NCBI GenBank assembly: GCA_002794465.1
Contig: MTSL01000142.1
Location: 11,928 to 43,927, forward strand
Direction of reading: 5' to 3'
Origin: Paramicrosporidium saccamoebae KSL3
Taxonomy: Eukaryota; Fungi; Cryptomycota
DNA length: 32,000 bases
A program made the translations under genes and the position numbers. The notes beneath the pieces were generated by a model. It saw only the letters and a program-made list of their open reading frames with translations. It was not told the DNA's origin and ran no database searches. Shown here in pieces: positions 1,692-32,000 of this stretch. The first letter of the stretch is position 1; every line of letters begins with the position of its first letter.

Positions 1692-1700
1692 AACAAAAAG

Positions 1701-1727
1701 TGCGACTTCTGTGGATTGAACACAGGG

Positions 1728-1766
<39 letters not shown>

Positions 1767-1773
1767 AAGTCGC
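1701..1773 (-). tRNA. trnF-GAA: tRNA-Phe (GAA), intronless
   Basis: Reverse complement GCGACTT TA GCTC AGTTGGGA GAGC G TCAGA CTGAAGA TCTGA AGGCC CTGTG TTCAATC CACAG AAGTCGC A forms a full cloverleaf. A T5 Pol III terminator follows at 1695-1699. Confidence 0.97.
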
Positions 1774-1814: not shown

Positions 1815-3161
1815 TTATAGCAACGCAGTTCCATTGACAAATACCGTGCGTATCCATCTGTCGTCACCCAAGAATACAAATCGATGTAGGGATTGTTCAA
1901 GAGTTTCGTGCTGATGACGTATGGATGGACAATTGGTCATATCGACCAATAGGGCGTCAAAGAAGTTGCCCTCTTCAAAGCTGCCCACATCTATACTCAA
2001 GGCTTCTGCTCCGCCCCGAGTTGCCAAAAAGAAGGCCTCACTTACTGTGAGCGGCTTACTCTTTTGATCGCTAAAGTGCAGCGTCTTGGATGCAATGATG
2101 GCTTGACGCATGGCGTCCAAGATGGAGAGACCATATCCACCGGATACGTCACTGCCCAGTCCCACAGGGATACCTGCGGCGGCCAACGCTCTGAGATCTG
2201 CAACACCACTGTTCAGAGCAAAGTTGGACGTGGGACAGTGTGAGACGGCGGTTCCGCTGTTTGAAAGAAGCGCGCGTTGAGCTTCATTCAAGTGTACACA
2301 ATGGGCGAGGAATGTTTTTCTTGTTAACAATCCGACAGAAGAGTAGATGGAGGCATAGTTGTGGCACTCGGGGAATAACTCTTTGGAAAACTGAATCTCG
2401 TCAAGGTTTTCCGACATGTGTGTTTGGATGTGCACGTCTGTCGAGATGGCAATTTCAGCCAACTTTTCCATAGAATCACGTGAACAAGTCAGTGCAAAGC
2501 GCGGCGTCACTACAGGCAGAACTCGGCCCGGGATCTCAAGAGATGCGTCGCACTTTTTCACGTATTCGACAAATTCACGAGTAGCCTGGACAGAGTCTGC
2601 AGTGCTCTCCACATAGTCTGACGGGGAGTTGCAATCCATGCAGGTTTTTCCTATGAGTGCACGTTGTCCCAGCTGGACGACCTGCTGCACCAACACTCGA
2701 TTTGCTTCAGCATGCAACCCACCAAAATAACAGCATGTGGTTGTTCCGTATCGTAGATAGTGTCGCACCATGTGTCCATAAATGTGTGCGACACGGGCAT
2801 TGTGTTCCGAGGGCGACTCGTGGGGCTGACGGGCGTAGGAGCGTTCTTCAGGAAAGGTCACCTTTTGCAGCCATTCAAGGAGAGTGTAATCGAGTCCTAG
2901 GCCGAGGTTCCGATATTGCGGCGCATGAGTATGCATATCAATGAATCCTGGTGTCAGGAACTGTTCGGGAGACAATTTTACCAGCTTGTGGTCAGTGGAA
3001 AGTGTAGTGATGGCAGTCTGAAGGGCCTCGGCGGATTCAAATTGCTGAACGCTGTTTATTCTCCCCGTCTGGTCATCAACACTAACCATTCCATGGTTGA
3101 TAAAGTCCACTTTGGAAAATGACTTTGGATTGATAAAGGCTCCCACATAGACTGTAATCAT
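1815..3161 (-). CDS. GUD1: Guanine deaminase (amidohydrolase superfamily), 448 aa
   Basis: PGFIDMHTHAPQY, VTPRFA, HIQTHMSEN, LAHCVHL, HCPTSN and GLGSDVSGG motifs in a single ORF. Confidence 0.95.
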   Translation of the reverse strand: MITVYVGAFINPKSFSKVDFINHGMVSVDDQTGRINSVQQFESAEALQTAITTLSTDHKLVKLSPEQFLTPGFIDMHTHAPQYRNLGLGLDYTLLEWLQKVTFPEERSYARQPHESPSEHNARVAHIYGHMVRHYLRYGTTTCCYFGGLHAEANRVLVQQVVQLGQRALIGKTCMDCNSPSDYVESTADSVQATREFVEYVKKCDASLEIPGRVLPVVTPRFALTCSRDSMEKLAEIAISTDVHIQTHMSENLDEIQFSKELFPECHNYASIYSSVGLLTRKTFLAHCVHLNEAQRALLSNSGTAVSHCPTSNFALNSGVADLRALAAAGIPVGLGSDVSGGYGLSILDAMRQAIIASKTLHFSDQKSKPLTVSEAFFLATRGGAEALSIDVGSFEEGNFFDALLVDMTNCPSIRHQHETLEQSLHRFVFLGDDRWIRTVFVNGTALL

Positions 3162-3306
3162 TCCAATATTCTGACTGCTCTATCGCTGATATCCCGGTTA
3201 TCGGGCCCAATGCTCCTAAATCCGGCTCGAATAATCACATCCGGTTTTAAATCATAACTCTCGGGTTAAAATCATAATAGCTGGCTTATAAGACCCCCTT
3301 TTAATG

Positions 3307-3360
3307 CCTGACTTGTAACACCCGACTTGTAGTGCCCGACTTTTAATAGCCGACTTGTAA
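3307..3360. repeat. Degenerate 14-bp tandem repeat (core CCGACTTGTAA) x4 in the GUD1/DTD1 divergent promoter
   Basis: Units start at 3307 (cctgacttgtaa), 3321 (cccgacttgtag), 3335 (cccgacttttaa) and 3349 (gccgacttgtaa). Confidence 0.8.
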
Positions 3361-3384
3361 TCATAATACTTTGCTATTTACATT

Positions 3385-3396
3385 AAATCCCTGGCC
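3385..3396 (+). promoter_or_regulatory. Candidate core-promoter motif AAATCCCTGGCC directly before the DTD1 ATG; recurs at other gene starts
   Basis: AAATCCCWGG also at 16364, 19291 and 31287 (minus). CCCTGGCC or its reverse complement also at 6914, 10311, 12283, 19295 and 19361. All lie upstream of start codons. Confidence 0.55.
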
Positions 3397-3880
3397 ATGC
3401 GGATCGTCCTGCAACGTGTCTCTCGTGCTTCCGTCACCGGTACCCCCCCAGTTGTCCTCTTATTTTTCAGTCAATGAACAGGTGGTTGGATCCATACAAA
3501 AGGGCGTTTGTTTGCTGATAGGAATACATCGTCAAGACACTCTCGAAGATGCCTCCATACTGGTCAAAAAGATTCTCAAACTGCGTCTCTGGCCTACAGA
3601 CCGGCAATGGCAAGCCAACTTGAGCGAAATTGACGGTTCAGTCCTGGCAGTGTCCCAGTTTACGCTGTATGCCATCACAGACAAGGGAGCCAAGCCGAAT
3701 TTCTACGATGCGATGGGGACAGAGGAGGCACGCACAATGTTTAACCAGATAGTCCAGATGCTCAGAGAGAGTCTTCCGGGAAGGGTGGAGACGGGCGCGT
3801 TTGGCGAGCTAATGAACGTAGACATTTGCAACGACGGACCCGTCACCTTGGTCCTAGAATCCAGATGTAACGCTCAGTGA
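3397..3880 (+). CDS. DTD1: D-aminoacyl-tRNA deacylase, 2 exons, 150 aa
   Basis: MRIVLQRVSRASVTV after removing intron 3440-3470; SQFTL and NDGPVT motifs. Confidence 0.95.
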
Positions 3881-3917
3881 GAGAATTAATAATAATAAAT
3901 GATCATATCCCCAACCT

Positions 3918-3982
3918 CAAGTCCCAATGGCAAGCTCCAATGGCAAGTTCCAGTGACAAGCTCCGGTGGCAAGTTCCAATGG
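3918..3982. repeat. 13-bp tandem repeat CAAG(C/T)TCCARTGG x5 between convergent genes
   Basis: caagtcccaatgg / caagctccaatgg / caagttccagtga / caagctccggtgg / caagttccaatgg. Confidence 0.85.
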
Positions 3983-4028
3983 CAATGGGCATTTATTGAA
4001 GCAAGTCTTTTACGTCGATTCGTGGCGG

Positions 4029-4907
4029 TTAGCGACGGATCTGTTCGATAATCTTGCTGACAAACTCGTGGATAGAGGGCGCATTCTGGGCCGTGATTAA
4101 ACGCTCGTCAATGACAACATTGGTCTCGAACGGCTTCTTGATCTCAGTCTTGGCACCACGCTCCTTCACACGCTCTTCTAGATAGAAAGGCAGATACTTT
4201 TCATAGCCCGTCTGTCGCTCCTCCTCCTTGGAGAAGCAGGTGATCCGCTTACCCTTAATCAACCAATCGCCACGTCGCTCCATGCGCACATTGAGCAGGC
4301 CAGCAACTCCATGCCCAATGGCTGCCACAACACCATTGCGCTTGTAAATCTCGGCAATGGTACAGGCAACATCGTCATGTTCTGGAAGATCAAACATGGC
4401 TCCATGACCACCGGGGAGGATGACCATCTTGAACTCTTCAGGCTTCACCCAACTGATGGGAACAGTATGGCCCATCTTGGCGATAAAGTCGCGCTCATCT
4501 CGCAGATTATCACGGAGCTTAGAGTCCTTCTCAATACGTTCCATGGAGAGCGGATCGGCAGCAACGGGTCCACCACGAGGGGTAGCAAAGACAAGCTCCA
4601 TGTTGTACTGCTTCTTCAGTGTCATCCAAATGTAGCCCAACTCAAAGACATCCACACCAGTAGGCTGATGGCTGGCACCAAAGGTCGTCTCAGTGCCCTG
4701 GATGGCAGAGTAGTTGGTGGGCGGATCCATAATGGTGGGCTGCGAGGGCAGCCACGCAGAGGGAGATCCAGGCACAACGGGTCCGTTTTCGTTGTTCATA
4801 GAGGTCGTTCCATCCTGGGAAAGACGACGTCCGCCACGGCCCGACTTGGGCAAATAGGCCTCGTTGGTGAGGATAATTAGGGCCTTCTTGTTTGCTAGGT
4901 TTTCCAT
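4029..4907 (-). CDS. DJ-1/PfpI (Hsp31-like) protein, paralogue B, with about 50-aa N-terminal loop insertion
   Basis: ATG at 4907 (MENLANKKALIILTN; the track start 4931 is TTG). TGVDVFE, ATPRGG, LPGGHGAMFDL, AAIGHG and LITAQN motifs. Confidence 0.92.
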   Translation of the reverse strand: MENLANKKALIILTNEAYLPKSGRGGRRLSQDGTTSMNNENGPVVPGSPSAWLPSQPTIMDPPTNYSAIQGTETTFGASHQPTGVDVFELGYIWMTLKKQYNMELVFATPRGGPVAADPLSMERIEKDSKLRDNLRDERDFIAKMGHTVPISWVKPEEFKMVILPGGHGAMFDLPEHDDVACTIAEIYKRNGVVAAIGHGVAGLLNVRMERRGDWLIKGKRITCFSKEEERQTGYEKYLPFYLEERVKERGAKTEIKKPFETNVVIDERLITAQNAPSIHEFVSKIIEQIRR

Positions 4908-4940
4908 TTGGTATCTGGATGGCTCAGCCAAGCACGTCCC

Positions 4941-5024
4941 TTTATATGCCTCGACTCATATACAATCACTGCATTTATCACACTGATTTCAATGTACACT
5001 GATAAATTGCCGTGGAGTATAAAA
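4941..5024. promoter_or_regulatory. Divergent promoter with two TATA boxes serving DJ-1 paralogues B and C
   Basis: TATAAA on the minus strand at 4941-4946 and TATAAAA on the plus strand at 5018-5024, each pointing at its gene. Confidence 0.6.
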
Positions 5025-5104
5025 GGCGTCTTGTTCAGACCCTCCCGTACCCGAGCCAAGCTCGATAATTCACCACGAACTACCTAAAAAGCTTTGTCGA
5101 CAAA

Positions 5105-5830
5105 ATGTCCCACTCCCACAGCCACGTTCTCGTCGTCCTCACCAACACCCGTGACCTGCCCTCCACCGGTCGTGATACTGAAGATGCCAACCCCCGCACC
5201 GGTTTTGATGTCAAGGAAGTCGCTTATCTTTACGAGTGTCTGACCAAGGAGCACAAGATTGAGCTCATCTTTGCCTCCCCCAAGGGTGGTGAGGCCTACA
5301 TTGATCCCTGCAGCATGGATGCCAGTCGCAATGACGAGATTGTCGCAAAGTTCATGAAGGATCAGGACGCCATGCAGAAGATCAAGAACACCAAGAAGCT
5401 CCGTGATGTCCGCAGTCAAAAGTTCCTGGGTGCCGTCTTCCCCGGCGGTGCTGGTGTGTTGATCGACTTGCCCAACGAGTCCATGGTCAACGACATTGTC
5501 CAGGAAATCTATCCCCGTCACGAGGGATTCATTGCTGCCATTGGTCACGGTCTTGCCGCCCTGTTGAACGTCAAGAGCGAAAAGGGCGACTTGTGGCTCC
5601 GGGGCAAGCGCGTCACCTGTCAGACATTAGAAGAAGAGAAGGAGCTGAAGCTGGAGCGTGCCCTCCCCTTCATGATCGAGGACAAGCTCAAGCAGATTGG
5701 TGCCAAATTTGAAAAGGCCACCAAATTCCAACCTTACGTCGTTGAGGATGAGCGTCTCATCACTGCCCAGAACAACTACTCGGTCAAGGAGTGGGTTACT
5801 GCAATTAAGCGCCATTGTCGTATGAACTAA
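5105..5830 (+). CDS. DJ-1/PfpI (Hsp31-like) protein, paralogue C, 241 aa
   Basis: TGFDVKE, ASPKGGEAYIDP, FPGGAG, AAIGHG and LITAQN motifs. Many C-ending codons suggest high expression. Confidence 0.93.
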   Translation: MSHSHSHVLVVLTNTRDLPSTGRDTEDANPRTGFDVKEVAYLYECLTKEHKIELIFASPKGGEAYIDPCSMDASRNDEIVAKFMKDQDAMQKIKNTKKLRDVRSQKFLGAVFPGGAGVLIDLPNESMVNDIVQEIYPRHEGFIAAIGHGLAALLNVKSEKGDLWLRGKRVTCQTLEEEKELKLERALPFMIEDKLKQIGAKFEKATKFQPYVVEDERLITAQNNYSVKEWVTAIKRHCRMN

Positions 5831-6050
5831 ATAGTGGCTCTTACTTGCCAATAAACGCCCACTAGCCATCCCTAGGAGTGTAAAGCGAAGAATGTGGAGA
5901 GGGGTTCGATGGTAATTTTTTGATCCGATCACGGGTTGATGTTAAGTAAACTTCCCTCCGTCTTATCCAAAGAATGCATCCTCGGTTATGCCTTCACTGC
6001 GCAACAGATGACAAAAGATTTTGAGCACACACTCTAGACTACAGCACGCA

Positions 6051-6923
6051 TTAGATTGCAACTTGCTTGCTTGTCACCAAATAATCAGCAGTCTTGCCAA
6101 GCTCACTTAATAATGAGTCGTAGTATTTTCGATACAGTTCGCTGTCGATATCGACTGGCTGATCTGACCTCATGAGCCAAACATGGCACAGCTCGAGATT
6201 ACCAATAAGCGAGTCTCTCAAAAAAACGGGACAATTGGGTTGAAGAATAATTTTGTTACAGGCCGAGGCAATATGCTGTTTCGCCTTGAGATTAGATGTC
6301 GTCATTAGGGCTTGACCAAGTCGAAGACAGAGCTTGGACCAGCTGATATGCTCCAATTCAAAGGTAACAACCTCGCTCATGGCATCTGCAAGTGTCCACA
6401 GAACCTTTCCGGGGAGATCAGATCTCTTCAGAATCATATCTGCTAGGCTAGTAAAACAATCAAGACGCTCGGCTGGCAATTTCGCACTCAGGCGGGTCAG
6501 AGCAGGTAGCAATTCAAACCTCACACTGCCTCCAATCCTCATAATGCGATCTACTACAGTTTCGAGAAAGTCGATCATCTGAGGGGATGAACAGTCCTCC
6601 TTGGTCGCCATCTCCGCGAGCACCCAAAGTACTTTTTCAAGAACCTCCACATTCATTTCCGCCAGTGAGATTCCAAGAACTGCACGGACAACATCTCCTT
6701 TGATATATTCTCCAAGTTTACTCCATACTTGAAACATTATTTGCAATGCAGACAAACAAAACGCCCTCTCTCCAACCAGATTGGCCATCCTCCCCAACCA
6801 CCTCACCGAATCCCTCCAATAATCCACATCCTGCACTCCCCCCGCCAGGACCGACAGTGCCTCTCTGATAGTCTCCAATCCCTTTTGATATCCATCCATT
6901 TTGGCGGGCTTCACCCTGGCCAT
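6051..6923 (-). CDS. Unknown alpha-helical (HEAT/ARM-like) protein; true start may be ATG 6899
   Basis: Uninterrupted 290-codon ORF with Leu-rich amphipathic helices, filling the gap between known genes. No family recognised. Confidence 0.65.
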   Translation of the reverse strand: MARVKPAKMDGYQKGLETIREALSVLAGGVQDVDYWRDSVRWLGRMANLVGERAFCLSALQIMFQVWSKLGEYIKGDVVRAVLGISLAEMNVEVLEKVLWVLAEMATKEDCSSPQMIDFLETVVDRIMRIGGSVRFELLPALTRLSAKLPAERLDCFTSLADMILKRSDLPGKVLWTLADAMSEVVTFELEHISWSKLCLRLGQALMTTSNLKAKQHIASACNKIILQPNCPVFLRDSLIGNLELCHVWLMRSDQPVDIDSELYRKYYDSLLSELGKTADYLVTSKQVAI

Positions 6924-6925
6924 TC

Positions 6926-7271
6926 ATGCAACCCGAGGTGGACCCAGCTATCGCGGCAGTGCCCGTGGTGAAGGAAGAGGCTCGAGTGCAAATTAAGAAT
7001 GTGGATATGCCAGAGGAGATGCAGCAGCGGGCTGTGGAGCTAGCAAAGGAAGCCGTACAGCCAAATGCCAGCCCCAGAGAGATTGCAGGAACCATCAAGC
7101 GCGAGTTTGATAAAATTTACGGCCCTGCCTGGCATTGCATTGTAGGCAAGGCCTTTGGTAGCTTTGTTACCCACGGTACACGGTCTGGGTTATCCTGAGT
7201 TTATAGAATCGCACTGCTTTATATTTTTCTACCTCGATAACTGGGCCATCATGTTGTTCAAGACTGCTTAA
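6926..7271 (+). CDS. DYN2: Dynein light chain LC8, 2 exons, 104 aa
   Basis: IKNVDMPEEMQ...IKREFDKIYGPAWHCIVGKAFGSFVTH|ESHCFIFFYLDNWAIMLFKTA; intron 7176-7206. Confidence 0.95.
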
Positions 7272-7718
7272 TTATTAACTGTGGGGGTTTGTAGTAAAGA
7301 TCCTTTATTGAGGGTTTTGATCCATTACATATTGTGACGTTAGTAATTATTGCGTGATGAACCAATTTGCGTCCAGGAGATGATAATCTATAGTGAAAGT
7401 ATGACCGGATGAAATAATTTACCATATAAAACACGATCTATATTGAATAAAAGCTCTCGCTAGGCGGATGCGACGGCAGGTAAAAGAGCCCTCCCGTCAT
7501 ACCTGGTCCATAGTTGTACTATTTCAGTAATAAAAATCTTTATATGTAAACCATGGATACGATAAATGGTGATACGTGATGGCATGTGATTATTAACTCA
7601 TTATCTCACAACAAGGCATGATATACTCTCATATTATCGCATCCCCACAGTCTCACACACTCACGCTGCATTTCCAATGTTTATTCATCTTATTGATACG
7701 TTTATATTATAAGCGCGC

Positions 7719-9310
7719 TCACCGCAGTAAACCCTCACGCCTGGCTTGCATGATTGCGGCGGATCGGATGGCTGACAGGATAAAGTATGTCATCATCAGC
7801 GCCAAAAACACATGCCAAACAGTACTAATCTTGTCCATTATCGGATCAGGCCGACGTTCTTGGAATACAGCACGTTGGGTCAAGAGCCAGTCATGGAATG
7901 CATGTCCCCACGAAGGGAGGCGCGTTTTGACAAGAGTGATTGCTTGTTCCAGGTAATCTCGCGAAAATAGAAAAATGACAAACGACGTCTACAGATCAGT
8001 CATGATAGCAGGGCTGTACTTGAATTCCCGCCTTGATAATGGCCTTTCCGAGAATTGTGGCCAAGGCAAATGTGCAGAATGGAATCATGTAATATCCACA
8101 GGTAATTCCGGTCAAATCGAAAAATGGATTCGGAATCTACAAAATTCAGAGCACAAAAAGATGTACCGATGCGCAGAGGAGGATACCAAAAAATCCAAGC
8201 CGAGTAACAGTCTGATACGAGGCCAACTGCAATGTCTCGAATAGCGTCTTTTTTCCCTTCTTCTTCGTGATTCTCTCGACAGTCTGCATCTCTCCACTTG
8301 CTTTTCCTGCCAGTGCAGCTAAAAGTTAGCCAGCCAGCGTAATAGTACATGCACGAGCAACAAGATAAGGTGGGAGTTCGCCGATAGCAGTACCAAGCCC
8401 CCACGCAAAAGCCTCCCATTTAATCTTGTTTAGAATTGTCAAAAGAGTGACGTTGAGCTCTTCAGACGGCTCGGTGGGACAGAGAAGACTATTGAGGCCG
8501 TACAGAGGGAAATCGGTCGATTTGCAAATATATGCAGCAGTAGTGACGCGAGCAATGAAGGGGCCGAGGAAGAGGAGGAATGTGTGTGCTCCGGTGCCAA
8601 GTCCTACCGAAGAGAGGATCCCCAGGACTACCCAGCGACCATACCACATGACTGCCTCTCGTACTGGTGCCAAATACGCCTGTTGAGGTCCGTCGAACAG
8701 GAATAGGGTGATAACGAGGAAAATGCAAACGACCACATTGGCCATAATGAGGGGCGAGTTGCGGGCCATGCCAGCTCCATCTTTTCCTAACGATACAGCG
8801 CATCTAAGTGCCAACATAATGGTCGTAATCGGGCTAGTCATGAATCCAATGTCCTCCGAGGTCATTTGGGACGATGTCTTGCTCAGAGGCTGTTCTTTAT
8901 GCTTAACTGGCGTCTTGGAGGGAGTTTTCCTTCGACCCGGGGAGACACTCAGTCCCTTGGGATTCTCCACAAACGGATTTGCCGCTGACTGAGCCTCCTG
9001 AAGACGCTGCACTAACGCTCCTTTGTTCCCGACCGGCGACATGCCCAGACTCGCAAGCTCATCCTTTAATTGGTTGACGCTCATCTTGGCGGGGCTCTCC
9101 GAACGTACAATAGTAGGTGGAGATGATCTACAAGTCAGTCACCCGAGGCACGTGCTACCGAGGAAATGCTGGAAGCTCGGCCTCTTCCAAGCGCGCAATT
9201 AGCTCACTCTTCTTCCCCATAGGGGAGAGATTGCGATTACGAAGCTCGTCTTTGAGCTTGGTGACGGTCCATGCGCCCATTTGGTATTGTGATTGAGGTG
9301 TTCCAGACAT
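7719..9310 (-). CDS. VMP1: VMP1 (DedA/VTT-family ER membrane scramblase) with two N-terminal SAP domains, 5 exons, about 489 aa
   Basis: VMP1 motifs [32 protein letters not shown] and [24 protein letters not shown]. Introns 9128-9158, 8319-8348, 8137-8166 and 7989-8019 give one open frame. Confidence 0.9.
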
Positions 9311-9516
9311 TTCTGGTGGATTCAAAACGACGAAAAATGTGAGGCTTGTCTCACTACCTGAACGAGGTCCAATACCCCAGTTGGCGCCATATAAGGAGTG
9401 TATCCGATTGGCCGGCAAAGGAAGGTGGAGGACGGTGAAATGTATAGAGTAAATCAATGCACAACTGCGTAGCGAGGGCCTGGTATTAGTGCTGTGTGGT
9501 GTTTCTACGACCTTTT

Positions 9517-9600
9517 TTAACGAGAGCTATTCTGGCTAAACTACATACTCTAAACAAGAGCTGCTTTGGTCGACGTCTATACTCTAAACGAGAGTTGCTT
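9517..9600. repeat. Degenerate 34-bp tandem repeat, about 2.5 copies
   Basis: ttaacgagagctatt (9517), taaacaagagctgct (9551) and taaacgagagttgct (9585); the first two units both end in atactc. Confidence 0.6.
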
Positions 9601-9804
9601 ATTGGACTACTGACCCTCATCGGATTATCCTTTCAAAGGGGGTCGCACATATGGCTGGCTGGCTCATCACGAGCTACTAGTCATCAAAATTACCCTGTAG
9701 TCGTCTGTGGTATGCATATCTCATGTATAGACCTTTGTCAACCCGGATTTTTTATTGTTGGTCCTGTTAGGACTTTTATTGCGCGTTAATTTGTCATGCA
9801 AGGT

Positions 9805-10284
9805 TCAGTGTGGGAGGCCTTGTTGTTCCATTTTCCAAGCTCTCACATGGAGAAGCGCATCTGATTCCATCGGGACGAAGTAAGGTACTGCACACACGAT
9901 GGACATGAGTGCGAGACGAAAATCTTCCCGCATGTAACCGAGTCCTAATCCTCCCAACGCTAGGATTACACCAGTGATCCTATTAAACAGATTCGATGCC
10001 AAAGGTGTGAGGCTTAGGACCATCATGATAGTACCCACTGCAAAGAAAGCATCACATGCGATGTACTGGAGCAGCACACGCCACAAGTATGATAAAAGTC
10101 TTGGATCCTTTTCAACTAGCGGTGCCATGTGCTCGCTATAAGCTTCATAACTGTCGAAAAAGTGAAATGCCGATATGACAATACGACACAAGATTATCAA
10201 GCCCAAAGCAACAGTACCGGCAGTGTGGCGCACTTTGGTTTTGGTAGGGGCATTGCTATGATGATGAAAGACGGCCGGCTGCAT
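9805..10284 (-). CDS. Small multi-pass membrane protein (possibly DoxX/SURF4-like), 159 aa
   Basis: Clean ATG ORF with about 4 hydrophobic segments and a CCCTGGCC motif 26 bp upstream. Family assignment is weak. Confidence 0.6.
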   Translation of the reverse strand: MQPAVFHHHSNAPTKTKVRHTAGTVALGLIILCRIVISAFHFFDSYEAYSEHMAPLVEKDPRLLSYLWRVLLQYIACDAFFAVGTIMMVLSLTPLASNLFNRITGVILALGGLGLGYMREDFRLALMSIVCAVPYFVPMESDALLHVRAWKMEQQGLPH

Positions 10285-10919
10285 GCTTGTAACGTCGGCT
10301 CTTTTTGTTGCCCTGGCCGTTATTATTCTGTAAACGTTATCTCTCTAAGTTGATTGGTCGCCTTGGTAAATATCTCAAACAACAATCCAGGGCCACATTA
10401 GTGGCCAGTGATACATAATGTCACTTTGTTGTATAAAAGACGGATAACGCTCAATAAATTAAGCTCTTGTGCGGAGCATCCGATAGTGAGGCCCTGAACA
10501 TAGGGGCTGTACAACCACATCGCAGTCGACAACCTGATCAATCCATCTCTCATCATCGAAATCGCGCCAGAGATGACCCGATCAACTCGATAGTGCCACT
10601 CCTGGGCGTCGCCAAAAAAGATAATACCAGCATTGGAAGTAGTTGTTTTAAGCTCGATAACGATAGATTCCATTGTTTTCATTGATCGGTCTGCATGTTT
10701 TCTTACTGGGTCCGGAGCATGAAAGTTGACTCCCTAAAACCCACGCAGCAAACAGTCTTGATGATCTGGACTACACCGGTAAATCTCTACAGCATATATT
10801 ATCTATATATGATACTACAAACAAGCCTTTTTACTTTCGCTTCTGCTCCATATTTTTATCACAGAAATATAGTCAGTGGCCCCGCACTCGCCTATTAATT
10901 CCCGACAGGGGGTCTCTAC

Positions 10920-11985
10920 ATGGAAATGACAGTGGACGTAGAGAGCAAAATCCTCAAGCAGGTCGAGTTTTACTTTGGAGACGCTAACCTCCCCCGTGAC
11001 AAGTTTATGCTGGAGCGCGTCCAGGAGAATGAGGGTGGATGTATGTGTTGATACAAGTTGCTCATATATAGGGGTTCCCCTTGACACCATTGCCACTTTT
11101 GGCCGTATGAAGCAGCTTAGTGAGGATTTTGAGCTCATCAAGGCGTCTCTTGAGAAGGAGAGCGATCTTATTGAGCTCAACGAGGACAAGACTCTTGTGC
11201 GCCGCAAAGTGCCAATGCCAGAATCCCGCGAAACTCTCGGATGCACTGTCTATGTAAAGGGCTTCCCCCAGACCGCCACTCTTGACGAGCTTGAAGAGTT
11301 CTTCTCTCAGCATTCAGAGCACGTCCAGGCCATTCGTTTCCGCCGCTTCCCCAAGGATCGTGTCTTTAAGGGATCCGTCTTTGTGGAATTCACCACTGAG
11401 GAAGAGGCCACTCGTTTTGCCGGCCTGTCTCTCTCTTACAATGAGACGCCGTTGGTGATCAAGTCCAAAATGGCCTACTTTGAGGAGAAGAATGCGGAAA
11501 AGACGCAGAAAAGCCAGGCGATGGACACTCAACTTTTGGAAAAGATGGGCCGTGGTCGTCTCTTGAAGATTTCCGACTTTCCCTCCGAGGGCATCACCCA
11601 TGAGAACCTCAAGGAGACCCTTAAGGAATCCTTCCCAGTCGCCTATGTCGACTTTAACTATGAGTCGGGCTGTGCCTGGATCCGTTTCCGGGAACCTGTC
11701 GCCGAAAAGTTTGTTGAAGAGTACAAGGAGAAAGCTTTGGAAATTGGTGAACACAAGCTGTCCTCTTTCCATGTGGCCACGGAAGAAGAGCAAAGCAACT
11801 ACTACAAGGTTTCCATGAAGCCCCGCAAGCCTGAAGGCGGCCGTGGAGGGCAGCGTGGCCGTGGAGGTCGTGGAGGCCGTGGCGGGCGCAGTGACCGTAG
11901 TTCTAGCAAGCGCTCCGCTGATGAACCTGCTGAAGATGCTGAAGCCGAGGTGAAAAAAGCCAAGGAAGATGAGGCTGACAATTAA
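10920..11985 (+). CDS. LHP1: La autoantigen (La motif, RRM1, second RRM, RGG tail), 2 exons, 344 aa
   Basis: KILKQVEFYFGDANLPRDKF...GG|WVPLDTIATFGRM across intron 11041-11071; FKGSVFVEF RNP1. Confidence 0.95.
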
Positions 11986-12314: not shown

Positions 12315-13977
12315 ATGAGTGAATCTTCCGAGTCACTACTATATAAACGTGCGCGGCATTTGCCAGACATTGCCGAGCCTTCCTCTTCCAATCTGGATGT
12401 TGACGCTCTAGTTGACGAGGTCCTCCGTGAGGATGTAGAGGGGTTTGAAATACGCAGCACTCCCCTAGGGGAGACTACTGCTAGCTCGGATGACGGCAGT
12501 TTTGATTCCTTTGGTAGTGAGTCAGAGGCTGTTTTGGGGGCTGATGATGAAGATGTTTGCATAATTGTCTCAGAAGACGAGATGGGGTCTAACCAATCCA
12601 CAGCTACAACTACGACTACAGAAACAGAGACAGAACTGAGGTTGGCCGAATCCCCACTCATTATATCGGATTCGGAAGTTGAGATCCCCAATATAGAATT
12701 GACAGATATTATTCAGGAGATAATGACGTACGGACCAAACCTTTTTGTGACCCGCCAGATGGAGAAGCAAATGTCTCCGGATATGCTGATGGAGTCCTTT
12801 GGGCACCCTATGCCTATAGGCATGATCCATGCAGATTTCGTAGGAAAATGGAACTTTGTGCGTAGATTCCTCCTTAAATATGTGTATGAGCGGCCTCGGC
12901 TGGGTGTCTCCTCAGTGGATGATGCGGTAAAACTTGTTCGTTCGGCGAAACGGATCCTAGTACTGACGGGTGCGGGCATTTCCGTCAGTTGTGGTATTCC
13001 AGATTTTCGTTCCGAGAATGGTCTCTATGCGCAAATACAGGAGAAATATTCTCTGCCAGAGCCAGAGTGTATGTTTGACATTGAGTACTTTCGCATAGAC
13101 CCTGAGCCGTTTTATTCCTTTGCAAAGGTACAAATTTGACGGCTGCATAATGGCTTAGGAGTTGTTGCCCAGAGAAGAATTTAAGCCATCATTCAGTCAC
13201 CATTTTATTCGGCATCTGGAACAGAGTGGCAAATTATTGCGCCAGTTTACCCAAAATATTGATACCTTGGAGGCTACCACTGGGATTGATCGTGTCGTCT
13301 ATTGTCATGGTAAACAATATCAGTCCATCTCATCTATAGGCTCATTTGCATCGGCGTCCTGTTTGGACTGTAGCAAGACAATTGACGTTGGGCAGTTAAG
13401 ATTGGCAATGGACAAGGACTCGATCCCCACGTGTAGGAAATGCGGTGGGATTGTTAAACCCGACATTGTGTTCTTCGGAGAGTCACTACCAAAAGCTTTT
13501 GATGATCACATTGCTACTGATTGTAATGAGGCAGATTTAGTCTTGGTGATGGGATCATCTCTAAAGGTCCATCCTGTCTCTTCAATTCCAGGTAATATCG
13601 CATTTGGCCCTACTTGACTTTTTCCAGATCTCATTCCGCCATATGTTCCCCAGATATTAATCAACAGAGAGTCCCTGGATCATAATTTTGATATTGAGCT
13701 GTTGGGAGACTGCGACATTATCCTGGCGGAGCTGTTCCGGCGATTACAATGGACCATAGATGACGAGACCATATTGGAGAGGTTTACCCCTCTTCTTGAG
13801 ACTACGACCAATTGTCGGTTTATCGAACCAAATTATCACATTTTCCCTGGCTCCAAGGTCGGAGCGGAGCCTGACGAGCCTCCTAGAGCTGCACCGGGTA
13901 GTCCCGCCAGCTCTGAAGGACTTGTTGGCCAAGATGAGGGGGATGATTTGCTTGCTATGGAGATGGCATTTGTTTAG
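12315..13977 (+). CDS. SIR2: Class I sirtuin (Sir2/SIRT1-like NAD-dependent deacetylase), 4 exons, about 521 aa, acidic N-terminus
   Basis: [27 protein letters not shown]|SF, CxxC...Cxx[16 protein letters not shown] and INRE motifs. Three introns of 31, 30 and 36 nt. Confidence 0.93.
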
Positions 13978-19322: not shown

Positions 19323-21155
19323 ATGTTGCGTTCATTAATGTATGAATGCGATCATAGTATGGCCAGGGCCATGAAGACATTGCTTAATGCTCTCCTTTTT
19401 GTTCTCGCGAGCCAAGGAGCTTGTGTAGCTAAAGGCCCTAATTTAGGAGATGGCGACAACGGCGTAGGTACTAAAGTGGGGAGCTTAGCCGACCTGCTTG
19501 AGCGTGGCAATAGACTAGAGTTGAAGGAGCTGGACGTCGAACTTGGAAAAGCACTGGGAGAAGACATTAGCGTACAGGATGCCTGGATCATCATGTCCAA
19601 CAGCGCAACGTTTCACAAAGATGCGATTCCACTCATCAGGGAAGCCGTGAAAATGGGCTATAATAACTACCTAAAATGCATGCTGAATGTCAGTTTTCCC
19701 TGGTGGCAGAATGAAAATGATCGCCATTGGTTCTTGGCATTGTCATACAAGGCGAGCTGGTACAACAAAGATTTGTGGACTGCACATCGACCAACTTTAT
19801 ATTGGAGGGAGCATATGGATGCCGCAATCAGGGCGGATAATCTGGTGTTTACACTATCTCGTCCCAGAACATTTGGAGCAGCTCTTAAAAACCCCGAAAT
19901 GGTTGACAAGTTTATTGAACACGATTCTGCCAAGCTGGTGGGGCACTATATCAATGATTTGAGTGTATTTACTGACAAGGTACAAGACTTGGTGTCTGCT
20001 GGTTCCGTTAACATTCTGCGTTTTTTAACAGAACAGGACATTCCGCTGAATACAGTTAGCATCCCTATGGAGGATGCCTGCCGTGATGTGGAAATCTTGC
20101 GTTTACTGTACGGGTACGGATATCAAGTAAAACTGGAAAAGAGTGTGCTTAATACTTTTATGGAGGAGGGAAAGCTTGCGTACCTTGAATTCTTCTACCA
20201 GATCAGTGTGGAAAATCTTCCAAGTCATTATAGTGTTTTCGACGCAGCTATAGCAGGACACTTTGAGGCCGTCAAATGGGTAGCAAGCAAGTCTCGAGAG
20301 CTAATTCCGTCATATTTCACCCCGCGTGACAAAGTTGAAAGCGGCCATCTGGCGGTGCTACAATGGATATTTGAGCAGGACCAGATAAAGGAGATTCCCT
20401 GCTATATAATGGCGCAAGCTATTTTCAAGGAACAAGTGGACATTATGAACTGGGCATACGGAATCGATCCAGATATTTTAGAACGCTGCAAAGGATCGTT
20501 CCCATTAGCCAATGAAAGCCTCTGTGCGGACGGAAGTAGTGAAAGTTTGAAATGGCTACATGATCATGACAAGGACCCAGCATTCCTTCTCAAAGAGTCT
20601 TGCTTATCTGCTGCCGCGAGAAACGGACGGCTAAATGTACTTACACTGGCCCGTCTCATAGGTTCCAATGCCCTTCCAACTGTCAGAGATCTTGATTGTA
20701 CTGCTGGCCGGGGACATTTGGGTGTGCTCACATGGGCGTATTCTATTGACGAGAAACTTATTCCCACTACAACCGGTGCGAATCACGCAGCGAAAAAAAA
20801 TCACGTTGCAGTCCTCGATTGGTTGGCCTCAAAGAAGGTGTATCCCAGCCAGAAAGCTCTCGATAAGTGTGTTGAGCGTGGCAAATTGGAAACGGTGCAC
20901 TGGATGATGAAAAAGTTCCCTACCATGGAGCCATCCTACTCGTCCACCCTTCAGGCTGCAGCTACTGGCCGCATAGGAGTCATCAGGCATATTGACAAAA
21001 CCAGGCCAAATTTACTCAAATATTCAGCGCTATTGGATGCAGCGAGAGCCAAAGGCTGGGATAGAACTGTTGAGTTCTTAAAGGCAGCCGCATCAAGGTC
21101 CAAAGATGCTGCAGCCCCCGAATCCCGACTAGGATCGACGTATTGCTTAGTGTAG
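19323..21155 (+). CDS. Putative secreted protein with about 10 divergent ankyrin-like repeats; start may be ATG 19371
   Basis: Signal-peptide-like MKTLLNALLFVLASQGACVA. Repeats such as AAIAGHFEAVKW, VESGHLAVLQW, TAGRGHLGVLTW and AAKKNHVAVLDW with 27-29 aa period. Intronless. Confidence 0.8.
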   Translation: MLRSLMYECDHSMARAMKTLLNALLFVLASQGACVAKGPNLGDGDNGVGTKVGSLADLLERGNRLELKELDVELGKALGEDISVQDAWIIMSNSATFHKDAIPLIREAVKMGYNNYLKCMLNVSFPWWQNENDRHWFLALSYKASWYNKDLWTAHRPTLYWREHMDAAIRADNLVFTLSRPRTFGAALKNPEMVDKFIEHDSAKLVGHYINDLSVFTDKVQDLVSAGSVNILRFLTEQDIPLNTVSIPMEDACRDVEILRLLYGYGYQVKLEKSVLNTFMEEGKLAYLEFFYQISVENLPSHYSVFDAAIAGHFEAVKWVASKSRELIPSYFTPRDKVESGHLAVLQWIFEQDQIKEIPCYIMAQAIFKEQVDIMNWAYGIDPDILERCKGSFPLANESLCADGSSESLKWLHDHDKDPAFLLKESCLSAAARNGRLNVLTLARLIGSNALPTVRDLDCTAGRGHLGVLTWAYSIDEKLIPTTTGANHAAKKNHVAVLDWLASKKVYPSQKALDKCVERGKLETVHWMMKKFPTMEPSYSSTLQAAATGRIGVIRHIDKTRPNLLKYSALLDAARAKGWDRTVEFLKAAASRSKDAAAPESRLGSTYCLV

Positions 21156-24074: not shown

Positions 24075-26845
24075 ATGCGCCGATGGTTCGTCACTGCTAA
24101 GGAGCTAGCAGGGACACTCAATTTGCCCAAAACGACATTTCCGCAAAGGGTGGATTATGCAGCAGTGGAGGAGAGATACAGAAGTATCATATCGACAGAA
24201 TTATACCAGGCACAGGTGGCGATCCGAGTTGGTCTGACTGTGGTAGCTCAATAAGGAGGGGCCTACGTTTCTTATCCATGATGGGCCGCCCTTTGCCAAT
24301 GGAAACCTCCACATTGGCCACGCCCTGAACAAGTTACTTAAGGATACCATTTTGAGGTCCAAAATCGAAAAGGGCTATCGAGTAGAGTAACCATCTCGGC
24401 ACTCTTTTTGATCCATAGATTCCGACCTGGATGGGACTGCCATGGTCTCCCCATTGAAATCAAGGCGCTTGCAAAGGCTCAAGGAAAATCCCTCACGCCG
24501 CTTCAGATCCGCAACATTTCTCAGCAATTTGCCCAAGATGCAATAAGCAGCCAAGCAGCAGAGATGAAGAGATGGGGTTTGTTGGCTGACTATGAGCACC
24601 CGGTCCGTACCTTGGATCCAAGCTATGAGGCAGCCCAATTGCGAGTCTTTGGTCAGTTAGTGCAGCGAGGCTTGGTGTACGCTGACAAAAGACCGGTTTA
24701 TTGGTCGCCTTCGTCAAGGACAGCGCTGGCAGAGGCTGAATTGGAGTATGTGGATGGTCACATTTCAAAAGCCTGTTTTGTAAAGTTTCCTATTGTGGGC
24801 ACTTTGGATGAATATTTGCTGATTTGGACCACCACTCCATGGACAATCCCTGCAAATCAAGCGATTGCAGTCAACCCAATGCTCAATTATGTACGTGTTA
24901 ATGCGGGACGGGAAAAATACATTGTCGCCCAATCCAGGATGGATGATTTAAAGGACATGTTTGAAACTGCACATGCCGCTGAAGCAGTCTCAATTGAAAG
25001 TCTATTGAACACTAAATACAAAAATCTATCAGGGAACTGCAATCCAGTGGTAGTTGGCGATTTTGTCACAAATGACGTTGGCACTGGGCTAGTCCATCTA
25101 TCTCCTGCATATGGACAGGATGACTTTGCCACGTGTCGAAAGCATGGAATAGTTGAGCAGGAGATTGTTGACATGAATGGAATGTACACTGACGCTGCTC
25201 CAGCAGAGTTGGCAGGAAAAAGCATCACGGATGTGGACGTACAGCTAGAGTTGTTGCGGACAAAAGGCCTATTGCTCCATAGCTACGACCATCGCCACCG
25301 ATATCCATATGACTGGCGCACCAAAAAGCCTGTCATCCAAATGGCCACACGCCAATGGTTTATCCGAACTGGCCCCATATTGGCTGAACTCCATGCAGCT
25401 TTGGAACCGGTGCAGTTCCTACCCGCATCGGGAAAGAAGCGTCTAGCAAACATGTTGGATGCACGGCAGGAATGGTGCATCTCGCGACAGAGAGTGTGGG
25501 GTGTCCCAATTCCAGTGTTTTACGACAAGGAAACCGATTCTCCCCTGTTGGACGTTGCTGTAATTGAACATTTTGCCAATCTGGTAGCTCAAAATGGTAC
25601 GAATGCGTGGTGGGAACTAGACAATATCGATTTGCTGCCTGACCAGTTTAAACATCTAGCCGATAGACTTGTACGTGGAAATGACACTATTGACGTTTGG
25701 TTTGATAGTGGCACCTTTTGGAGCTCCACTACCGACCCATCCGATATCTACATTGAGGGAACAGATCAGCATCGTGGATGGTTCCAGTCGTCACTTATCA
25801 CCTCGGTCGTGTCTCGTGGGATATCGCCATTTAAAAAGCTAGTCTCCCACGGGTTTGTGCTGGACGAGCGGGGCAATAAAATGTCAAAATCAGTGGGCAA
25901 TGTCATCGCACCGGATGAAATCATCAAGGGCACGGGAAAGCTTCCAAGGGGAACTGATGTTCTTCGTCTCTGGGCCGTCTCTTCAAATTTCCTAAGCGAT
26001 GTGACAGTGGGGCCGATTTTGTTGGAGCGCACTGTCGAACTCCATCAAAAGTTGCGGAATACTTTTAGATTCATTTTGGGAAACTTGGTGGCGTTTCCTG
26101 GATCATTAAAATGGGAAGAACTAAAGGATGTTGATCGTTTGGTCCTGTCCAAATGCGAAACCATCAAGCAGCAGGTACAGCAAAAATATGACGAACTGGA
26201 TTTCAGTGGTGGCATTGCTGTATTGCAAGCGTTTGTCATTGAGGATCTCTCGGCTTTTTACTTTGATGTGATTAAGAATCGGCTGTATATAGACACTGCC
26301 CATTCCTTGGGTCGCCAAAGTGCACAAACTGCGCTGGGTCAGATTGCATTACGGCTGTTGTCTTTATTAAGACCGGTTTCACCATATCTCTGTGCAGAAG
26401 TCACAGCGCATCTTCCCAACAGAAAAGAAATGCCGATTACTAACTCTGACGATAGTTTGGCACGGTTGATGCAGGTTCGGTCTGCAATGAGAATAGAATT
26501 GAACCGTCTCAGAAAAGAGCAGTAATTCGCCATGTTGAATGTGGTCTTGATGTTTATAGATTGTTGGAATCGACATATCAGGCGGACATTGAACTCTCCG
26601 ACACAGAGGCGGGCTGGGACGATTTGGCAGAGATATTCATGGTCAATTCTGTCCGTCGACATTATGGTAACCAACCTGCATTGTCAGTAGTGGAGATTGA
26701 GGGATTGGGACTAGTTCGTATATTGAGGGCAGAGCATGGAAAATGTCCCCGATGCTGGATGTATCGCTTGGAGACTGACGAGGAGATTTGCAGACCCTGC
26801 AATAGGGTTCTCAACCTTGGCGAGGTGTTGGCTAATGAGAATTAA
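24075..26845 (+). CDS. ISM1: Mitochondrial (bacterial-type) isoleucyl-tRNA synthetase, 4 exons, about 889 aa
   Basis: [55 protein letters not shown] and KMSKS motifs; C-terminal CPRCW...C..C. Introns of 31, 32 and 38 nt. Confidence 0.93.
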
Positions 26846-31504: not shown

Positions 31505-32000
31505 TCACCGCAGGGTGAACTTGGGGTTACTTCCGCGGTACGAACAACGAGATCCCCATTGCAGGATTACTCTACATTCCCTAGGCCTTGCGACGCTATT
31601 GGACTCTGGAATTTTGTTCTTCAAAAAGTCAGCTATCTCTTGGAACCCAGCAGCCCCAGCAGCTACTTGGAATACGGAATCATCCAAGCATGCTGGTTTG
31701 GTTTTGTAAAGGTGTTTGATAATCTCTAGACGGCCGGTCTTTACACTATCAATAATGGCATCAAATGATGGTTCCAGTGCAGGCAAAGTCCGAATAATCC
31801 AACGCACAACAGCCAATCTTCCAGATGCAATGGAACTGTTGAAGCCTTTTTGGTCAGGATACAGACCAATGGAGGCCAGCCATTGCAAGACTTGGATACG
31901 TCCGCTACCAGCTGCTGTATTTGCGATTCTAACGTCAAGAACTAGGCCTTCATTTTTGGAAAATACCCACTTGAGCAGATCCAAATGTCCGAGACCAGCT
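31505..32000 (-). CDS. C-terminal part of a second ankyrin-like repeat paralogue of the 19323 gene; 5' end outside the window
   Basis: Frame is open to the window edge (AGLGHLDLLKW...AAGSGRIQVLQWLAS...YP...GRLAVVRW...EPS...TGRLEIIKHL) and aligns repeat for repeat with the 19323 C-terminus. Confidence 0.82.
   Translation of the reverse strand, partial: AGLGHLDLLKWVFSKNEGLVLDVRIANTAAGSGRIQVLQWLASIGLYPDQKGFNSSIASGRLAVVRWIIRTLPALEPSFDAIIDSVKTGRLEIIKHLYKTKPACLDDSVFQVAAGAAGFQEIADFLKNKIPESNSVARPRECRVILQWGSRCSYRGSNPKFTLR

Follow-up and report, generated by a model that had tools for sequence, protein, structure and literature searches.

Among the closest known relatives of the gene considered here are the canonical VMP1 proteins (VMP1/EPG-3/Tango5/KMS of mammals, nematode, fly, plants, Dictyostelium and apicomplexans), and ER localisation and phospholipid scramblase activity are documented for human VMP1 (PMC8077175) and for apicomplexan VMP1 proteins (PMC12749514). 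The stretch that we analysed, called the window below, comprises 32,000 nucleotides of contig MTSL01000142.1 (positions 11,928 to 43,927) from Paramicrosporidium saccamoebae KSL3, a rozellomycotan that lives as an intranuclear parasite of amoebae (PMC5701793). On its minus strand, at 7719-9310, the window carries a gene that is almost certainly the P. saccamoebae orthologue of VMP1, an endoplasmic reticulum (ER) lipid scramblase of the DedA/VTT superfamily, with an N-terminal SAP module that occurs in many fungal-side and animal-side lineages and is doubled here as it is in Rozella and in aphelids. The membrane core of the window protein is orthologous to that of the canonical proteins, with which it shares the GELPPY and IPNPxFDLxGIxCG motifs, and is 45% identical to the marsupial VMP1-like protein P0090; the difference lies in the SAP domain, which is absent from P0090, the sole vertebrate protein among the hits. 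Two other sets of proteins resemble the window protein in architecture as well. The SAP-VMP1 proteins of Rozella and Amoeboaphelidium, which belong to the same or a neighbouring deep fungal lineage, have the same order of two SAP domains, linker and VMP1 core, although outside the core their identity to the window protein is about 35% or less; no experimental study of them was found in the searched literature. The VMP1 proteins of chytrids and invertebrates (for example, Batrachochytrium dendrobatidis BATDEDRAFT_37041, Spizellomyces sp., a mollusc VMP1-like isoform X1, Leptinotarsa VMP1 isoform X2 and Macrostomum lignano A0A1I8F3U9) share the N-terminal SAP, the variable linker and the core, at 35-39% identity over 85-99% of the query, but have one SAP domain instead of two, and linkers that mostly lack S/T-P-x-K/R sites.

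The gene model was obtained by three-frame translation and inspection of the junctions in the genomic sequence. The gene and the parts of its protein are given below (P0001, P0004 and P0005 are related proteins; L001 and L002 are loci on two metagenome contigs).

7719-9310, minus strand: SAP-SAP-VMP1 coding region, from ATG (9310-9308) to TGA (7721-7719), five exons; aligns end to end with VMP1 homologues
9310-9159, minus strand: exon 1, with the start codon and SAP1; N-terminus kept in P0004, P0005 and L002
9179-9277, minus strand: SAP1, residues 12-44; Pfam PF02037, 45.7 bits, E=4.5e-12 (exon 1 alone)
9158-9128, minus strand: intron 1, 31 nt, GTAGCA...CTGACTTGTAG; an intron stands at the equal position in L001 and L002
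9127-8349, minus strand: exon 2, with SAP2, the basic linker and the first half of the VMP1 core
8986-9090, minus strand: SAP2, residues 64-98; Pfam PF02037, 40.6 bits, E=1.8e-10 (SAP2 segment)
8854-8985, minus strand: basic linker, residues 99-142, isoelectric point (pI) 10.3, probably disordered
8905-8952, minus strand: three S/T-P-x-K/R sites (S113, T119, T123); P about 0.001 against shuffles
7722-8853, minus strand: VMP1 membrane core, residues 143-489, across introns 2-4; invariant motifs GLGTG.HTF, GELPPY and IPNP.FDL.GI.CG
within the VMP1 core: Pfam VTT_dom, residues 295-394, 29.2 bits
8348-8319, minus strand: intron 2, 30 nt, GTACTA...CTAACTTTTAG; absent from P0001
8318-8167, minus strand: exon 3
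8166-8137, minus strand: intron 3, 30 nt; absent from P0001
8136-8020, minus strand: exon 4
8019-7989, minus strand: intron 4, 31 nt; junction spanned by the alignment of full-length homologues
7988-7719, minus strand: exon 5, ending with the stop codon TGA (7721-7719)

The spliced coding sequence is 1470 nt long and in frame, and encodes 489 amino acids. The coordinates proposed in the initial annotation run exactly from stop to start, and every peptide quoted there is found on the minus strand. All four introns start with GT and end with TAG, and shortly ahead of its 3' end each has a branch motif that resembles CTRAY or TGAC. One open reading frame (ORF) of 252 codons (8326-9084) contains SAP2 together with the linker and the first half of the core, so SAP2 and the transmembrane region do share a single exon, as had been claimed. 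The claim that SAP1 is joined in frame through a 31-nt intron is likewise supported. In the metagenome relatives P0004 and P0005 (50% identity), SAP1, SAP2 and the VMP1 core form a single ORF. Locus L001 contains a 39-nt in-frame GTAC..TAG intron candidate where the window gene has intron 1, and at locus L002 a conserved SAP1 exon lies upstream in a different frame and is therefore joined by splicing. Other introns of 30-31 nt occur in the same gene, and the neighbouring sirtuin gene has a 31-nt GTAC..TAG intron at about 13128-13158. Retention of intron 1 leads to a TAG stop at once. Relatives share the start codon and the N-terminal motif PQSxYxxGxWTVTKLK, and P0001 reads directly through the junctions of introns 2 and 3, matching the spliced window protein ('ARASAEAG...' at one of them). 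By comparison with relatives, which back all of the splice junctions, the observation of one fused gene is confirmed. Introns in the P. saccamoebae genome can thus be just 30-31 nt long, mostly with a GTAC start and a TAG end. A regular-expression scan for tiny introns across the whole window gave a flat length distribution, and gene-by-gene junctions were used instead. In the protein collection a 100% match is found for the product of the neighbouring contig gene PSACC_02091 but not for the SAP-VMP1 protein, and the public annotation may miss the gene or model it otherwise, the tiny introns being a likely cause.

The assignment to the VMP1 family rests on similarity over the whole membrane part. 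The homology search returned 1847 matches at E<=1e-5, with the best E down to 1e-116, and matches named 'vacuole membrane protein 1' (from molluscs, insects, a marsupial and Gigaspora) had E values of 1e-71 to 1e-81. The best named matches, from chytrids, the nucleariid-type entry Nk52, molluscs and insects, together with the marsupial VMP1-like protein, are 35-46% identical to the query. The alignment with homologues spans residues 143-489 with the invariant motifs intact, and the core is complete, as the initial annotation had stated. Both re-entrant-loop motifs of the VTT/DedA domain are present: in an alignment of 58 sequences G300, E301, L302, P303 and P304 are invariant and Y305 is nearly so, and the second motif agrees with the consensus IPNPLFDLAGITCG. 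A point against the assignment is the VTT_dom score, which lies below the Pfam gathering cut-off of 33.9 bits, as it does in other bona fide VMP1 proteins (22-31 bits in the other SAP-VMP1 proteins scanned likewise); family membership was therefore rested on full-length similarity and motifs. In a precomputed table most homologues carry PF27639 beside PF09335; the window protein has no PF27639 match in the local Pfam copy, which probably omits this profile. The window gene is thus by sequence a routine VMP1 orthologue, for which ER residence and scrambling are predicted from the family.

The two SAP domains and the basic linker with three S/T-P-x-K/R sites, all described in the initial annotation, are present too. 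Both SAP domains far exceed the PF02037 gathering cut-off of 23.9 bits, and the sole Pfam matches of the window protein at E<=1 are SAP, SAP_new25 (weak) and VTT_dom. A PDB sequence search yielded no solved VMP1 relative and only weak SAP matches, the best for SAP1 being Tho1 (E=0.11). The fusion itself had been proposed to be a new architecture, with animal VMP1 proteins lacking SAP, and neither proposal stands. When the 120 best VMP1 homologues were scored with a SAP profile built here from the hits, 61 proved to have an N-terminal SAP, in agreement with the precomputed PF02037 column. These and other public proteins number in the dozens, and several are already titled 'SAP domain-containing protein' in UniRef. 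The SAP-containing VMP1 proteins come from Chytridiomycota (Batrachochytrium, Spizellomyces, Geranomyces, Powellomyces, Phlyctochytrium, Polychytrium and others), Blastocladiomycota (Sorochytrium), Mortierellomycota (with weak scores against the profile built here), aphelids (Amoeboaphelidium, Paraphysoderma), the nucleariid-type Nk52 entry, two EukProt holozoan entries, sponges (Corticium, Oscarella), molluscs, annelids, insects (Leptinotarsa, Polyplax), the crinoid echinoderm Antedon and the flatworm Macrostomum. The matches from Mucorales, Glomeromycota and Zoopagomycota and the marsupial P0090 are SAP-less, and S. cerevisiae and S. pombe have no VMP1. Against a library of representatives at 50% identity, the exon-2 product found 1049 representatives at E<=1e-3; SAP is present in 25 of the best 150, and many of the others are N-terminally truncated fragments. 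By the initial annotation's own account, the claim of novelty would fall if the architecture were common among eukaryotic VMP1 proteins, and this is what was found: the window gene is a further member of a SAP-VMP1 type already in the databases, not a new fusion.

The presence of SAP on VMP1 proteins of both Holomycota and Holozoa means that the combination dates back to the common ancestor of fungi and animals or earlier, with loss or absence in several lineages; this estimate of age covers fungi, animals and their unicellular relatives. The SAP consensus, including its G-x-K turn, is maintained from sponge to chytrid, which argues for a selected function. Among the mollusc VMP1-like isoforms, Argopecten X1 and Littorina X2 have the SAP, and Dreissena X2, Pomacea X2 and Babylonia X2 do not (P0020, P0026, P0062, P0071 and P0077). 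This hints that animals make forms with and without SAP from one gene by alternative first exons, the isoforms being compared across different species.

The tandem form is rarer than the single one. Two Pfam SAP stretches are found in ten further proteins: those of Rozella allomycis (EPZ33300.1 / UniRef100_A0A075ASZ9, 'SAP domain-containing protein'), Amoeboaphelidium occidentale (KAI3657548.1) and A. protococcarum (MP228_004670), P0004, P0005 and five unnamed metagenome proteins. With the profile built here, Rozella's second SAP has a weak score. SAP doubling is thus common to Rozellomycota and aphelids, either inherited or produced by duplications that happened more than once. Of the single SAPs in other lineages, 29 are nearer to SAP1 and 21 to SAP2, and an assignment of the original copy from 35 residues is ambiguous. 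In the P0329 cluster (JGI metagenome, about 765 amino acids), which is also a tandem-SAP VMP1, the linker between SAP and core is roughly 300 residues long, far longer than in the window protein.

The linker of the window protein is distinguished by its potential phosphorylation sites. Its 44 residues contain three S/T-P-x-K/R sites, compared to a mean of 0.27 in composition-preserving shuffles (P about 0.001), and a fourth such site, S62, is located outside the linker. Each of the close relatives P0001-P0003 has three sites (P 0.0002-0.005), P0017 contains two (P about 0.06), and five other relatives have none or one, which is the level expected by chance; the linker of the close relative P0005 has no site of the type phosphorylated by cyclin-dependent kinases (CDK). 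Across the SAP-VMP1 family, the linker varies from 10 to 186 residues in length, and 20 of 62 linkers contain any such site. Control by a proline-directed kinase is at most a reasonable guess at the level of the lineage, not of the whole family, and the kinase cannot be named.

Among the possible functions of this architecture we tentatively prefer one in which part of the scramblase pool is kept at the nuclear envelope by the SAP domains and might be let go when the linker is phosphorylated. A tether of this kind, as inferred in the initial annotation, is plausible. The part of the protein that precedes the first hydrophobic segment (142 residues, 15.5 kDa, pI 10) would face the cytosol or nucleoplasm. 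This orientation is expected because there is no signal peptide, positive charge is found immediately ahead of the first hydrophobic segment, and the topology of TMEM41B agrees with it: in this paralogue, cysteine accessibility places both the N-terminal region (S35) and the C-terminus in the cytosol (preprint 10.1101/2020.12.18.423352). Two helix-extension-helix motifs of the SAP type would then bind a nucleic acid, with double-stranded DNA or chromatin as the most likely partner. DNA is the usual ligand of SAP domains, including those of SAF-A, Ku70, PIAS and Tho1. Proteins of the inner nuclear membrane, when small, are usually targeted there by diffusion and retention, and the limit on extramembrane mass for passage along the pore membrane is roughly 60 kDa. 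The N-terminal part is well below this limit, and therefore the protein could reach the inner nuclear membrane from the ER by diffusion and stay in it; alternatively, it could be captured on chromatin as the envelope reforms. Either route would locate scramblase activity at the nuclear envelope. The S/T-P-x-K/R cluster lies beside SAP2, where a kinase of the CDK or mitogen-activated protein kinase (MAPK) type could add negative charge and weaken binding, and the remaining pool of the protein would do the ordinary ER work of VMP1.

The nearest functional parallel is provided by the HeH/LEM proteins (Heh1/Src1, Heh2, Lem2, MAN1). Heh1/Src1, Lem2 and MAN1 carry a related fold before transmembrane segments and reside in the inner nuclear membrane. 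The likeness consists in an N-terminal helix-extension-helix motif of the DNA-binding type placed on the nucleoplasmic or cytosolic side of a membrane protein. There is no homology beyond this small fold. Pfam scores the window protein as SAP and not as HeH or LEM; there is no Pfam match to a C-terminal MSC/winged-helix domain, and a strong nuclear localisation signal (NLS) and a long linker are also lacking. The membrane part is a multi-pass scramblase, not two plain helices. Membership in the HeH/LEM family was considered and rejected, given that no HeH, LEM or MSC profile matches and that the C-terminal part is a VMP1 core. The comparison drawn in the initial annotation is reasonable as a functional analogy: the window protein may work like a HeH/LEM tether while standing outside that family.

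Several points weigh against anchoring at the nuclear envelope. The SAP-VMP1 proteins are known from their sequences alone, and none of the literature searched assigns VMP1 to the inner nuclear membrane. The linker shows no classical NLS consensus, its length (10-186 residues in the family, as given above) and charge vary widely, and CDK-type sites are missing from 42 of the 62 SAP-VMP1 linkers and from P0005. Some SAP domains bind RNA or proteins, not DNA. Finally, the mammalian P0090 and the matches from Mucorales and Glomeromycota have no SAP; the existence of SAP-less VMP1 in several lineages means that SAP is dispensable for the core function of VMP1.

A different ligand would lead to a different location. 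It is possible, although doubtful, that the SAP module acts on the cytosolic face of the bulk ER, where it would bind RNA (such as ER-associated mRNA or ribonucleoprotein) or a partner protein and thereby direct the scramblase to certain ER subdomains or contact sites, or control it there; this is the main alternative. Published work describes VMP1 as an ER protein at autophagosomal, lipid-droplet and lipoprotein sites. Some SAP domains (Tho1/SARNP, ERI1) bind RNA, and the weak PDB match of SAP1 to Tho1 fits with this, as does the variable linker, which would suit a flexible tether to a soluble ligand. Most characterised SAP domains, however, belong to nuclear proteins. The nucleoplasmic and cytosolic faces are topologically equal, so the sequence by itself cannot separate an ER-face function from anchoring at the nuclear envelope: the two differ only in the ligand and in the location of the protein.

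We consider it improbable that the SAP domains are a structural or regulatory appendage that has no nucleic-acid ligand and serves, for instance, oligomerisation, auto-inhibition or turnover, or that they are a decaying remnant heading for the loss seen in several lineages. The patchy distribution would be compatible with such a role, because SAP is missing in P0090, Mucorales, Glomeromycota, Zoopagomycota and several mollusc isoforms or paralogues, and the SAPs of Mortierellomycota score weakly. Against this reading, both SAPs of the window protein score far over the Pfam cut-off, very distant lineages maintain the consensus with its G-x-K turn, and Rozellomycota and aphelids duplicated the module and retained both copies. 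The last alternative, in which SAP1 or both SAPs would be encoded by a small gene of their own and the start of VMP1 would lie further downstream, is very improbable indeed, for although retention of intron 1 would bring an immediate stop with ATG 9084 left to begin a SAP2-VMP1 protein, and the missing 100% match may mean that public annotation missed or remodelled the gene, a two-gene artefact is rejected by the single ORF of P0004 and P0005 with SAP1, SAP2 and core and by the intron position kept in L001 and L002, and is further contradicted by the exon that holds both SAP2 and VMP1 core, by the usual occurrence of 30-31-nt introns in this gene and in its neighbour, and by the equal architecture of orthologues annotated independently across many genomes.

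The neighbours of the SAP-VMP1 gene are housekeeping genes (dynein light chain, La/RRM protein, sirtuin, DUF726, SURF1, ankyrin-repeat protein and others). Gene order in the VMP1 region (1815-11985) is amidohydrolase, D-Tyr-tRNA deacylase, two DJ-1/PfpI genes, an unknown gene, dynein light chain, SAP-VMP1 and La/RRM protein, and it is common to the two metagenome contigs with loci L001 and L002: the dynein light chain gene is present in both, the DJ-1 pair, D-Tyr deacylase and amidohydrolase are present in L001, and a La/RRM-type gene lies on the other side. The contigs with shared order are the 22.5-kb ENA metagenome contig ERZ27237304 k141_477122 and, in part, Logan contig ERR11523675; with protein identity of just 50-55%, they are probably derived from uncultured Paramicrosporidium-like organisms.

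Other features of the window were noted in passing. The DJ-1/PfpI-like paralogues are arranged head to head (4029-4931, minus strand, and 5105-5830, plus strand), and L001 also has two adjacent DJ-1_PfpI genes on opposite strands. The longest ORFs of a 290-residue protein with no Pfam match (6051-6923, minus strand) and of the dynein light chain (6926-7198, plus strand) start 2 bp apart; their true starts may be internal, or one very short bidirectional promoter may serve both genes. For the conserved C-terminus of the dynein light chain to be included, a short intron near 7175-7200 is required. The isoleucyl-tRNA synthetase (IleRS) ORF at 24408-26522 matches a P. saccamoebae protein, 'hypothetical protein PSACC_02091, partial', with 100% identity, which marks the window as DNA of this organism; the public model (region 24408-26842) is labelled 'partial' and begins at 24420 without the N-terminal part of the enzyme. 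The IleRS gene has one mapped intron of 56 nt (26400-26455) with a TACTAAC branch site. Similar repeat wording ('...VLxWLASxxxYPxQK...') in a pair of ankyrin-repeat genes (19323-21155, plus strand, and 31505-31984, minus strand) suggests a lineage-specific expanded family. A tRNA-Phe (GAA) gene (1700-1773, minus strand) is located between a GHMP-kinase-like ORF and the amidohydrolase gene.

In the searched literature, no relevant paper links VMP1 or vacuole membrane protein with a SAP domain: SAP is never mentioned in the searched VMP1 papers on mammalian, Drosophila and apicomplexan systems, nor is it mentioned in an evolutionary study of the DedA superfamily, and the P. saccamoebae genome paper (PMC5701793), which reports transcriptome sequencing, contains nothing on introns, autophagy or VMP1. 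The 30-31-nt introns may have kept the gene out of the public protein set, which bears on comparisons of gene content in Rozellomycota and Microsporidia.

A SAP domain of the nucleic-acid-binding type is present in about half of the best VMP1 matches, in organisms from sponges to chytrids, and an ancestral and widespread SAP will probably come as a mild surprise to VMP1 specialists. If SAP truly anchors the scramblase on chromatin or the envelope, work on vertebrates would be blind to a part that VMP1 plays at the nuclear envelope. If there is no such tether, SAP is still a conserved feature of a much-studied protein of autophagy and lipid metabolism, and one that has no assigned function. A broader and rather unlikely proposal is that the SAP-VMP1 proteins constitute an ancient nuclear-envelope class, a chromatin-anchored scramblase inherited from the ancestor of fungi and animals, which would have been kept or doubled where the envelope needs local scrambling and lost elsewhere, as in the mammalian hit and several fungal groups. 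Should such a class exist, the biology of VMP1 would be tied to growth or repair of the nuclear envelope or to nucleophagy.

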